Part shown: in pieces, positions 8,201 to 11,200 of the stretch | Numbering within the stretch: position 1 is the stretch's first letter | Layout: the number at the start of each line of letters is the position of its first letter | Notes under the pieces: model-generated | Databases searched by the model: none | Seen by the model: only the letters and a program-made list of their open reading frames with translations | What the model was told of the DNA's origin: nothing | Made by a program: the position numbers and the translations under genes | NCBI GenBank assembly: GCA_951804945.1 | Contig: OX638154.1 | Location: 52,948,001-53,012,000 of the forward strand | From: Podarcis cretensis | Taxonomy: Eukaryota | Direction of reading: 5' to 3' | DNA: 64,000 nucleotides

Positions 8201-11200
8201 TTTCAGGGAATATATTTATACCCTAGCCTTCTCCCCAATATGCAAGTTTTCTATATGTAAGATTTTTCTTTTCTTTTCAGAGTGGGGTGGGGGGTAGGGT
8301 ATTAAGTACCGGTAATAAGCACACATCTGCAATCTTTAGTACATATAAAGTGCAGGTTTGCTTTCCTTATCAGGTGTTTCTGAGAACTAGGACAAAGGAT
8401 GCATATTAATTCACCAGGGATAACGTGTTCCCAGCTGGGCAGATCAGGGCTCTGATACAGGATAATGGAGAGAAATGATGTATCTATATTTTGCATGGAA
8501 ATCCAATTCAGGGAGCCTCTGGAAATATGTTGACTTGGTCTAGGTGTTCTAATAAAGTGTGTCACATTTTCTGTTTATCCAGAGATCCATAGGCGCCTGT
8601 CTGAACTGAAACTAGGGAACTCAGCTACATCTCATATTGAACAGCTGCTGGTGGAGTTGACTACCCAGGAGGGAAAAAACCAACTGGCTTTGGATGCTCT
8701 GCGGAAACAAGTGGAACTCCTGCAGGTATCAGCAGAGACCAGGTAAGGCTCAAAGAGGGACCATTTCTGGGAATGGATAGAGTTCCATCAAAGGCTGGAG
8801 AAGCCTAAGATCATTCCCTATCTGAGGTTGGAATAGGGGAGTCAGAAAAGGTCAAAAAGACCATTTGGGGAGTCTATCCATGACTCAAGCATTGTGGGAA
8901 GCAAGTATTATCACAGATTGAAAAAAGTAAGATGATACTCACACACCTTATTGGTTTTTTTTTTAGAAGCAAACCCAAATCTCCCATCAACAGACAGACA
9001 GACTTTGCTGAGGGCAACATAGAGAAAAAGGTCTTCAAGTCTATGTCATTTCCAGCAGCAGTTGGACCCCTCTCTTCAGAGATACAGTGAGTAGGGAGGG
9101 AGCTGCAAGACTAAATGGGACAATATTTTCTGTAAACAGAATTGACTATCAATTTATTAGATCTTTCACTATTTGTTGCCTGTGGAGCTTTCTCCTGGAT
9201 TCCTCTCTGTCCCACTCTTGGGAAGCTCTGCAGTTGCAAGTTGCTACTCTGGGTGGATGGGAAGCAGATACTTTTCAATGGATGAGAGAGGAAACAACTT
9301 TCTTCCCAGTGGGCACAGTCAGTCCCTTTTCCCCACCATGTTGCACATCTTCATGAAATACAGGTATTTAGCAAGCCCAGCTGTATTCATCTTCATGCCA
9401 AGAAAAATAGTTCCTTTGATTCCCCACCACCACCATCCTGAGCTAATAAAGACTTTGAAATGCTGTCAGAAGGAGAAAATCTAGCAATAGCACCAATAAA
9501 TTGATGATGCATTTGTGTTTCCCTGCAGGGCACTTTACCTGGCTTATTTGCAGGGGGGAGGCAGTGACCATAACATCCTCCGTCAGATGTATGAGCTGCA
9601 GGTGGAGGCCACAGCCCTGGAGAAAGTAGGAGCAAGGCCTGAGCACAAGGGCAGAAAGAAGAGTGAGCTTTGTTTCCCTGTTTTCTTCTCTCCAAACTTG
9701 GATATTGTTGTGTTGCATGCTACACCAATATCCAAGTAGTGTGAAATTCCAGGGGTTCCAAGTGCTTACTCCACAGTGGAGACTGTGGTGTCTTTATGAT
9801 ATATATATGATACACACACACACACACACAACCTGAGCCTACAACAGAGGAGCTCACAACATTATCAGCCCAAAAAGCCACTTCCGGGCCTGGCCTAGGA
9901 GGTGGGGTTGCGGGCTTCACGCCCACCCCACGTGAGCGGGGGCTGGCTCCAGCCCCCACGAGAGCAGGAGAATCCCCGTCGGGCCGGCCCCCCCCCAGCC
10001 AGCCAATCAGCTGGTCGGCTGGGGGGCGTGGCTTGCCCTATTTAGGGCCAGCGCGGAGGGGGCTCGCCCTCTTTTCGCCGGCTCGCCCCCACGTTTTTTC
10101 CCACCCTCCCTCCCTTTAAGTGGGTTTAGGCTCAGGCAGGCCTTTGACATTGCTATGGACTTCGGTCTGTCGCCGCAAGGGGCATGGTAGGAATTTTTCC
10201 CAATTGGCAATTTCGGGCCTTTTGGTTTTTCGCCTACCTCGTAGCAACTCGTCACAACTTCTCGGCATTGGCGGTAGGCATTGGTAAGAAGGGGTTAAGA
10301 CGATGTGGGGGGGGGAGGAACGCCATCACCTCCCCCCAGTGAGCGAAGGGTAGTCCGTTAAAGGACCCCGGGGGGCGTGGCCCTGTCCGAAGCCTATGGA
10401 GGTGTGGGCCAAAGGCACGCCCCAGAGCGGTGACCCGGGGGAGCTCCTAGTCGACGTGCCTCACGGGAGTCTCCCCCGATATAAGGTTAACCCTTCCCCG
10501 TGTCTCCAGCAAATGGGCTGGAGCCGGATAGTCGTTAGGACCAATGTCTAAGCCAATGCCTCTCATTCCTGAATTCAATAAAGTTGTGGCCTAATTCGCC
10601 CAATTAACCTTACATACGGTGTCTTGTGTCTTTATTTATCCTGGTGGGGGCGGGAACTCGCCACGCAACAGTTTTGCTTATCCCATAGCCACAGGCTTGA
10701 ATGCCGGCCATCAGAAATTTGGCATGGTTCTCACAAGCATTTTGCTTCTTTCCTTCTGGCTTCTAGCTCACATCACTGCAGCTTTCAACTTTGTATTTGT
10801 CCTTCAACTCATCTCACAAAGAACCCTTTCCTTTGTTTACCTTAATGGCCCATTACACAGGTTATCACCTCAACACAAGAAGGTAGCCTGGCTTATATTT
10901 TAACATTTGCTGGATTCAGGTTAGATTTAGAAGGATCTCACATACAGCCTACTTCCTCCCCCACCCCAACTTATAACAGTATCATAGACTAGGCTGACTC
11001 TTGGACCCTTGGGACAATGTGGCACTCTCTAGATGCTGTTGGGCTTCAATTTCTATCAGCCCCAGTCAACATGGTCAATGCTCAGGGATGATGGAAGTTA
11101 TAGTCCAGCATCTGGGTGGCATCATGTTGGCTGTCCCTGCCTTTAGGCCTTGAGCTCAAAAAGGCTTTACTATTCACAGCCAAGTGAGAATCAATTCCAC

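Follow-up and report, generated by a model that had tools for sequence, protein, structure and literature searches.

The analysed window, a 64-kb stretch of lizard DNA, carries a high-copy interspersed repeat unit of 793 nt on the plus strand (9874..10666), whose extent was determined from contigs with an empty site. A predicted multi-helix RNA module occupies positions 10145..10254 of the same strand, as derived from sequence reading, RNAfold and partition functions. Upstream of the module lies a promoter-like part (9880..10045, plus strand) that contains an ETS-type ACTTCCGG (9880-9887), a CCAAT motif (10003-10007) inside a computed palindrome (9991-10026), the GC box GGGGCGTGG (10023-10031), and the TATA-like TATTTAG (10039-10045). 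These boxes were read from the sequence and assigned by general Pol II promoter consensus motifs, which we take to apply to this unit. Downstream of the module, a subfamily-variable segment (10290..10345, plus strand) was recognized from loose ends and from a contig (X4) in which 39 other letters replaced 10276-10345; the segment includes a G9/C-rich hairpin (10306-10338), detected as an inverted-repeat pair. A poly(A) site of canonical layout follows on the plus strand (10577..10634), composed of AATAAA (10577-10582), CA (10613-10614), and the GU-rich GGTGTCTTGTGTCTTT (10618-10633), approximately 350–400 nt downstream of the module. Near the end of the unit, TGGTGGGGGCGGGAACTC (10642..10659, plus strand) resembles a primer-binding site, being the complement of a tRNA-like ...CCACCA 3' end; it was assigned by reading the letters, and no tRNA was matched. 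The 793-nt unit contains no encoded A-rich tract.

Stranded RNA reads over 10172-10567 were sparse and mostly of plus sense. Past 10567, the plus-sense depth dropped from 12–16 to about 3 and then to about 1. Most of the RNA reads (204 of 217) fitted only partly and may have originated in host transcripts that contain diverged copies. Among the RNA reads shown, none had a poly(A)-bearing end.

The 793-nt repeat unit and its insertion

Contigs of two organisms (B and G) joined position 9873 to position 10667, skipping 793 letters, with 2 letters fitting both sides. The filled site was represented by a contig of organism A in which the unit, from 10643 on, was continuous with the flank (1 mismatch in 255). 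Because the site is empty in organisms B and G, whose flanks have diverged by 2.6% and 6.4%, respectively, the insertion of the unit is recent. The boundaries can be shifted by 2 nt (to 9876-10668), as AA is common to both ends. Across three DNA runs, 2,400–2,650 contig pieces were placed per run. The summed word depth, which is not a true copy number, was maximal at 10172-10259 (2–4.5 × 10^5), compared with 54–91 in the unique flank, and this suggests that thousands of copies exist in at least three lizard species. The depth in the 5' part of the unit was 5–10 times lower than at the peak. Divergence between the copy in the window and the family majority was only about 2–3%. Overall, these results bear out the initial annotation in its placement of the module within a vertebrate interspersed repeat, here a lizard unit with thousands of copies and an empty site in relatives.

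No second copy was detected in the 64-kb window, where both BLASTN with 9-base words and a single-sequence covariance model run with filters off returned the module stretch alone. Two 22-mers from the module had zero exact matches in viral, metagenome, and prokaryote genome contigs, and an 82-aa minus-frame ORF over the module had no word-sharing relative. Four short direct repeats, spaced approximately 340 nt apart in the unit, had prompted the reading of an internal duplication, which was rejected (local alignment score of 30; shuffles, 24 ± 3.2, with a maximum of 34).

The element most likely belongs to the tyrosine-recombinase retroelements (DIRS/Ngaro-type), with the 793-nt stretch being either its terminal-repeat unit or a non-autonomous form; this assignment is based on one junction contig and on the lack of a target-site duplication. 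This class was favored over an ordinary LTR because only 2 bases were shared at the empty site in the contigs of the two species, which is no real target-site duplication. The junction contig (X4) linked 10668 to 9897 via a variant of the first 19 letters of the unit; this one head-to-tail joint is what a circle junction or split repeats would produce, but tandem copies would give an identical contig. In Ngaro/DIRS-type elements, with their split direct repeats (A1 ... B1-A2-B2), insertion likewise occurs without target-site duplication, head-to-tail end junctions like the candidate one seen here are formed, and regulatory signals lie within the repeats, as the putative ones do in this unit. 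The lizard unit differs from them in that no gag, RT, or YR gene was linked to this copy or present in the window: none of the 149 open frames of at least 75 aa in the window matched a transposon protein family, and its five long ORFs encoded no transposon protein. The 793-nt unit may be a solo or non-autonomous form.

Predicted fold and conservation of the module

On the plus strand, the module is closed by an outer clamp of two helices, UGAC/GUCA (10145-10148 with 10251-10254) and TTGCTATG/CGTAGCAA (10150-10157 with 10240-10247; UUGCUAUG/CGUAGCAA in RNA). The clamp encloses a GAC-UUCG-GUC hairpin of the cUUCGg type (10158-10167), a CC-GCAA-GG hairpin (10173-10180), and an ENE-like hairpin (10186..10238). 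The lower stem of the latter, GGUAGG/CCUACC (10186-10191 with 10233-10238), is followed by a spacer of AA (10192-10193) and CG (10231-10232) and then by a 5' U5 tract (10194..10198) and a 3' U5 tract (10226..10230). An unpaired C10199 separates the 5' tract from the upper stem, CCAA/UUGG (10200-10203 with 10222-10225), above which a UU/UU internal loop, GGC/GCC, and an 8-nt apical loop complete the hairpin. A second GGUAGG (10273..10278, plus strand; GGUAGGC at 10273-10279) lies beyond the clamp. Direct reading thus placed all the helices, both U5 tracts, the tetraloop hairpins, and the second GGTAGGC exactly where the initial annotation had put them.

RNAfold reproduced the multi-helix architecture that had been proposed, with a minimum free energy of −39.1 kcal/mol (z = −3.2) and none of 200 shuffles folding as well. 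Partition functions were computed in contexts of 110, 201, 326, 531, and 793 nt. Across all five, the lower, upper, and apical stems of the ENE-like hairpin had pair probabilities of 0.96–1.00, and both U5 tracts were unpaired with p ≥ 0.99 (1.00 in every context for the 5' tract). The closing helix reached p values of 0.7–0.9, and the two small tetraloop hairpins were less certain (0.3–0.55). Competition of the second GGUAGG for CCUACC, which had been anticipated, was not seen, the lower stem having p = 1.00 in the partition function. Two G-U pairs of the module are specific to the plus strand. Sliding-window z-scores reached −3.8 in other parts of the repeat and −2.3 on the minus strand of the module; with z-scores equal to or better than that of the module elsewhere in the repeat, and with a minus strand that also folds, the module is not set apart by thermodynamics alone.

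A descriptor of the form stem-U5-hairpin-U5-stem was found 2 times in the window, compared with 0.06–0.19 matches expected per 64-kb window from dinucleotide shuffles, and a strict descriptor allowing no spacers had 0 matches in the window. The second match (11910-11962) is probably a chance occurrence, being located in T-rich sequence.

Loose ends clustered at 10134/10142 and at 10275, the latter in all three DNA runs. The stretch between them (~10135-10275) is the best-kept block of the family, with the highest depth across subfamilies, and it nearly coincides with the module at 10145-10254. The notion of a module shared among copies was in this respect well founded, with the depth peak at 10172-10259 and the loose ends on either side. 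The window copy differed from the family majority within the module only at 10167, 10168, and 10184. Five variants were listed inside the module, namely those three, 10220, and a T insertion after 10225, and each was judged separately against the fold. The C>T change at 10167 converts a G-C pair to G-U, positions 10168 and 10184 are unpaired, T>A at 10220 adds a U-A pair adjoining GGC/GCC, and the inserted T extends the 3' tract from U5 to U6 in 13–19% of the family depth. All five variants leave the pairs intact, for which a rough chance estimate is about 0.04. Apart from the T insertion, no high-share change affected the tracts or stems in the three species among the variants listed. As the copies are young, the conservation of the module may be mere recency, and the depth dips around it may reflect indel-prone segments rather than constraint.

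Comparison with ENEs and other structured RNA elements

The ENE-like character assigned to the loop in the initial annotation was retained in outline, in that U5 (10194-10198) faces U5 (10226-10230) between two stems; the G-C pairs that should adjoin such a loop were missing, their place being taken by AA (10192-10193) and CG (10231-10232) below and by C10199 above. Adjacent G-C pairs are part of the ENE definition and serve as the A-minor platform (review), and in Evade the G-C pairs directly flanking the U-rich loop are essential (Evade paper). The missing platform makes a true ENE less likely, although the module may still act in an ENE-like manner, since interruptions of the A-minor stem are tolerated in the lower domains of double ENEs (review). 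We regard the module as a candidate ENE. In Rfam 15, no family overlapped 10145-10254 at E ≤ 10, and the sole match in the searched stretch was ST7-OT3_4 on the minus strand (10257-10284, E = 1.7), just outside the module. Ribozyme covariance models (hammerhead, HDV-like, twister, and others) produced no match at E ≤ 10, which lends no support to the self-cleavage that had been raised for this RNA.

The KSHV PAN RNA ENE resembles the lizard module as a hairpin with a facing U5/U5 internal loop between stems, located upstream of a poly(A) site. In PAN, this geometry yields five U-A-U triples with the tail (review). The PAN loop directly adjoins the G-C pairs that take the A-minor contacts, whereas the lizard module has the 2-nt AA/CG spacer and the bulged C. 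The lizard hairpin also belongs, together with two tetraloop hairpins, to a clamped multi-helix junction, is located approximately 350–400 nt from the poly(A) site, and is described here from its sequence and predicted fold. The transposon ENEs of plants and fungi (TWIFB1 with its double ENE, Arabidopsis Evade/Copia93, and LTR-embedded cases) share with it a U-rich internal-loop hairpin in the RNA of a mobile element. Some of these transposon ENEs are embedded in LTRs, and others precede the 3' LTR and its poly(A) site by a long distance. The plant Evade ENE guards retrotransposon RNA from deadenylation and raises mobility. Most plant cases are double-domain, whereas the lizard module has a single domain; the flanking G-C pairs essential in Evade are absent from it; and the carriers are Copia, Gypsy, or hAT elements, in contrast to a repeat of tyrosine-recombinase-type appearance in a squamate host.

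Regarding animals, the ENEs named in the review are only those of stickleback retrovirus-like elements and MALAT1/MEN-beta, and transposon-borne ENEs amount to a few predictions. Like the lizard module, the MALAT1 and MEN-beta (NEAT1) ENE is a vertebrate U-rich internal-loop stem-loop, and there it protects the RNA 3' end. Its U tracts are interrupted by C and G, it acts with a downstream encoded A-rich tract, and its RNA is processed by RNase P at a tRNA-like structure, none of which is found in the lizard unit. In retroviruses and LTR retroelements, structured leaders and packaging signals form a conserved multi-helix domain with GNRA-type loops in a non-coding transcribed part, as does the lizard module. 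To our knowledge, a symmetric U5/U5 loop is not usual in such signals, and the lizard module differs from them in having no identified apical-loop dimerisation palindrome or Gag-binding motif.

Candidate roles of the module

The preferred reading, for which we consider the chances to be evenly balanced, is that the module makes up the conserved core of a non-coding, transcribed region in a young lizard repeat and acts in cis as a structured RNA element. The plus-strand RNA would fold into the clamped multi-helix domain, whose central hairpin would hold the two facing U5 strands open, and the module would serve the transcript of its own element in cis. We infer this RNA-level action, and its role, from the fold and its conservation. 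The anatomy points to a single concrete mechanism, an ENE-like one, in which the U5 strands could form a U-A-U triplex with the poly(A) tail of the same transcript from a position approximately 350–400 nt upstream of the poly(A) site. Protein binding to the U-rich loop, or a role in packaging or reverse transcription, would be the other candidates, and taken together they appear about as unlikely as tail capture.

That the module is a true poly(A)-clamping ENE is, in our judgement, improbable but worth serious consideration. Such an ENE, single-domain and with an unusual lower junction, would form five U-A-U triples with the tail and protect the RNA from deadenylation and decay, so that its level would rise. 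It would account for the outline of a stem, facing U5 strands unpaired at p of about 1.0, and a further stem, which is rare by chance (0.06–0.19 expected per window), and for a hairpin that equals the family majority in three species, where the only tract variant listed lengthens to U6. The canonical poly(A) signal downstream, at which the plus-sense RNA depth drops, is also in line with it, as are the precedents in transposon RNAs, some in LTRs or hundreds of nucleotides before the tail, and the tolerance of double-ENE lower domains for an interrupted A-minor stem. It is opposed by the AA/CG spacer between the tracts and GGUAGG/CCUACC, the bulged C10199 and the lack of strict descriptor matches, and by a weak upper stem (4 bp, a UU/UU loop, and 3 bp); further, the unit lacks an A-rich tract, RNA is scarce and tail-bearing ends are absent among the reads shown, and no Rfam family matched. 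The more specific proposal, a working ENE with non-canonical pairs (A-G / A-C) beneath its U5/U5 loop where G-C pairs would be expected, within a two-tetraloop junction of a recently active squamate element, is equally doubtful.

Rather unlikely, too, is an explanation in which the module has no RNA-level function, the block being kept by the youth of the copies or by a need at the DNA level (e.g., as a promoter-proximal or recombination sequence) and the fold being a by-product of GC-rich sequence and two T runs. A copy that is only about 2–3% away from the family majority has hardly had time to decay; low z-scores were also obtained elsewhere in the repeat and for the module's minus strand (to −3.8 and −2.3, respectively); plain T-rich DNA at 11910-11962 matched the descriptor, apparently by chance; and the RNA reads were few and mostly partial. 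Against this explanation, the boundaries of the subfamily block coincide with the module ends, the five variants listed spare or improve pairing, at the rough chance estimate given above, and two stable tetraloop motifs and the G-U pairs occur on the plus strand only. It is highly improbable that the unit is an ordinary solo LTR, whether from a DDE-integrase retroelement or from an endogenous retrovirus, with the module as a leader or R-region structure beside a primer-binding site. The order of promoter-like boxes, a long transcribed region, and AATAAA would be expected of such an LTR, and TGGTGGGGGCGGGAACTC (10642-10659) starts with TGG in the style of a primer-binding site; however, the overlap at the empty site is 2 nt instead of a 4–6 bp duplication, the unit is bounded by AAAGCC...CGCAA and not by TG...CA, TGGTGGGGGCGGGAACTC is itself part of the insertion, and a second LTR is absent within 30 kb. 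The empty site and the termini largely refute the solo-LTR reading together with its primer-binding site.

The significance of the module would depend on its role. If the module is a true ENE, transposon-borne ENEs would be extended to amniotes and to a new element class, the structural rule for the A-minor platform would be relaxed, and a vertebrate system would become available for asking whether tail capture helps retroelements spread. The replication of tyrosine-recombinase retroelements is poorly understood, and a module that serves in packaging or priming would be among the first cis-RNA elements described for them. If it has no RNA role, it would be no more than a conserved stretch of a young repeat. 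The family is young, with thousands of copies and with this insertion present in one lizard species but absent at the same site in relatives, and would constitute a natural covariation data set.

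A recently inserted high-copy repeat

Contigs of three DNA runs (from the lizards termed organisms A, B, and G), and raw reads of one RNA run (organism G), were compared with the window over 9600–10900. Approximately 9874–10666 proved to be a high-copy repeat unit, with 2,400–2,650 contig pieces matched per DNA run and a summed word depth of 2–4.5 × 10^5 versus 54–91 on the unique flanks, which suggests thousands of copies, although summed depth does not equal copy number. In organisms B and G, contigs linked 9873 straight to 10667, skipping 793 nt, with just two letters (AA) matching both sides and flanks that were 2.6 and 6.4% divergent relative to the window sequence, respectively; in organism A, the site was filled (1 mismatch in 255). 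The unit is thus a recent insertion without a real target-site duplication. About 40 nt upstream of the insertion point lies a microsatellite in which (TA)n is followed by (CA)n (9799–9831), and 9797–9841 was skipped as repeat in the read comparison.

Insertions of LTR elements by a DDE integrase are expected to show a 4–6 bp duplication and TG...CA termini. A solo LTR of such an element was largely refuted, as there was no 4–6 bp duplication and the unit termini were AAAGCCACTTCC...CCACGCAA. The loose-end consensus of several runs had the identical 5' terminus after unrelated flanks, and a single contig linked the 3' end of the unit back to its 5' end, forming a head-to-tail junction. Ngaro-type tyrosine-recombinase retroelements carry split direct repeats (A1...B1-A2-B2), and the unit fits a repeat unit, solo form, or non-autonomous form of a tyrosine-recombinase retroelement. 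No transposon protein was encoded among the open frames searched within the window, so that this class is inferred. The 3' end (10642–10668) includes TGGTGGGGGCGGGAACTC, which resembles a primer-binding site. Joined head to tail with 9874–9890, this end reads ...GGAACTC-GCCAC-GCAAA-GCCAC-TTCCGG..., with two direct GCCAC copies between GGAA and TTCC that could, speculatively, serve a recombinase as its core site, AA being the crossover point.

The window contained no N runs. Among its open frames are two with aldo/keto reductase family matches (best E = 1.4e-10) and another with a match to TPR/SHNi-TPR repeats (E = 3e-9), all probably host-gene exons. At 391 aa, the ORF at 40204–41376 on the minus strand is the longest in the window; it had no Pfam match and is perhaps a large host exon of low complexity. 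A full-length U5 spliceosomal RNA match was found at 3143–3258 on the minus strand (110 bits, model positions 1–117, E = 6e-19).

Fold and variation of the module

All elements named in the initial annotation of the 110-nt module at 10145–10254 (plus strand) were present on direct reading: the lower stem GGUAGG/CCUACC (10186–10191/10233–10238), the 5' and 3' U5 tracts (10194–10198 and 10226–10230), the upper stem CCAA/UUGG (10200–10203/10222–10225), the GAC-UUCG-GUC (10158–10167) and CC-GCAA-GG (10173–10180) hairpins, the clamp helices UUGCUAUG/CGUAGCAA plus UGAC/GUCA, and the second GGUAGGC (10273–10279). RNAfold returned the same architecture at −39.1 kcal/mol (z = −3.2), and 0 of 200 shuffles were as stable. 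In partition functions of the window copy, the one copy folded, computed in five contexts (110, 201, 326, 531, and 793 nt), all three stems of the central hairpin (10186–10238) had pair probabilities of 0.96–1.00 and both U5 tracts were unpaired with probabilities ≥0.99 in every context. The clamp was paired at 0.7–0.9, and the two small tetraloop hairpins were uncertain (0.3–0.55). The downstream GGUAGG, suspected of competing for CCUACC, did not do so in any context. A stem-U5-hairpin-U5-stem descriptor had two matches, one of them the module, versus 0.06–0.19 expected per window from dinucleotide shuffles; the other match (11910–11962, plus strand) has T-rich surroundings (GC about 0.34) and no similarity to the repeat, and looks accidental. 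The fold score calls for caution, since sliding-window z-scores were −3.7 to −3.8 elsewhere in the unit and −2.3 on the module's minus strand.

Word depth was maximal at exactly 10172–10259 and 5–10 times lower in the 5' part of the unit, loose ends in the DNA runs clustered at 10134/10142 and 10275, and a segment past 10275 (about 10290–10345) differed among subfamilies, one organism B contig having 10276–10345 swapped for 39 other letters. The block shared by subfamilies, about 10135–10275, therefore nearly coincides with the module. The variable segment includes a G9/C-rich hairpin (10306–10338) and, on the minus strand, weak Rfam noise matches to a frameshift-site model and miRNA models (E 0.6–6.5). 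No second copy of the module was found within the window or in the sequence collections searched. Among the variants listed, the window copy differed from the family majority within the module only at 10167 (C>T), which turns a G–C pair into G–U, and at 10168 (T>G) and 10184 (A>C), both unpaired. The listed minority variants were 10220 T>A (22–47% of depth), which adds a U–A pair lengthening GGC/GCC, and a T insertion after 10225 (13–19%), which makes the 3' tract U6. Judged singly against the fold of the window copy, none of the listed variants broke a helix, for which we roughly estimate a chance of about 4 in 100; with 107 further entries beyond those listed, this is a hint and not a test.

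Transcription signals and RNA reads

On the plus strand, sequence reading placed ACTTCCGG (9880–9887), CCAAT (10003–10007) within a palindrome, a GC box (10023–10031), and TATTTAG (10039–10045) ahead of the module, and AATAAA (10577–10582), CA (10613–10614), and a GU-rich run (10618–10633) beyond it; we take these boxes, from general consensus knowledge, to have promoter and poly(A) roles. This would put the module about 70–180 nt past the probable start and about 350–400 nt ahead of the probable poly(A) site. The palindrome (9991–10026; 15-nt arms CCCCCCAGCCAGCCA/TGGTCGGCTGGGGGG) is centered on the CCAAT box, and windows over it reached z = −3.8.

The RNA run, one stranded library from a related species (organism G), yielded 217 matched reads from about 12% of the run. 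Reads over 10172–10567 were mostly in the orientation meaning plus-sense RNA (e.g., 14.7 versus 3.75 and 16.2 versus 0), and past 10567, at AATAAA, depth was down to about 3 and, farther on, to about 1. No tail-carrying ends appeared among the read ends listed, and 204 of the 217 reads fitted just partly and may derive from diverged copies within other transcripts. As the reads were few and mostly partial, the family is expressed weakly, or in some tissues only, as judged from this sample. At 9994–10049, 70–80 organism G RNA reads matched there only, with unrelated sequence on both sides; thus, a 55-nt piece of the promoter part sits inside another expressed organism G transcript.

Possible roles of the module and ends of copies

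The initial annotation had proposed an ENE-like loop; an ENE is a triple-helix RNA stability element whose U-rich loop captures a poly(A) tail. In the literature consulted, the definition of an ENE has two parts, a stem-loop whose U-rich internal loop adjoins G–C pairs and a poly(A) tail or A-rich tract, and in the Arabidopsis Copia93 retrotransposon Evade, the G–C pairs immediately adjoining the U tracts were essential. The module has the U5/U5 loop between stems but lacks the adjoining G–C pairs: the lower stem is set off from the tracts by AA (10192–10193) opposite CG (10231–10232), and a strict form of the descriptor had no match in the window. C10199 is unpaired above the loop. Non-canonical A–G and A–C pairs might bridge the AA/CG gap, and double ENEs can have interrupted A-minor stems in their lower domains. 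The lack of G–C adjacency lowers the case for membership, though the module may still act like an ENE. Nor is the distance to the tail disqualifying, because the Evade ENE precedes the entire 3' LTR and ENEs embedded in LTRs have been described. The module matched no Rfam family, and as ribozymes were included, self-cleavage found no backing. Altogether, we consider a true ENE unlikely.

Among known systems, the module comes nearest to the single-domain ENE of the PAN type and to the ENEs of plant and fungal transposons. The animal ENEs named in a review are only those of stickleback retrovirus-like elements and MALAT1/MEN-beta, and our literature search found no ENE-like element reported for reptiles or DIRS/Ngaro elements. 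A cis-acting structured RNA with another role, such as protein binding at the U-rich loop, packaging, or priming/template switching, seems about as probable as an ENE, and the chances are even that the module is a structured cis-acting RNA with some RNA-level function, ENE or other. A fold without any RNA-level role would accord with the youth of the copies, the equally good folding of other unit parts, and the scarcity of RNA; we regard it as a tentative possibility, somewhat doubtful.

Near 10602 (10602–10612), three organism G contigs depart from the unit and run on as ...TTAACCTTAAAAAGAAGAAGAAGG, and some copies may end in an A-rich run near the predicted poly(A) site. If true, this would hint at retroposed, tail-bearing copies.
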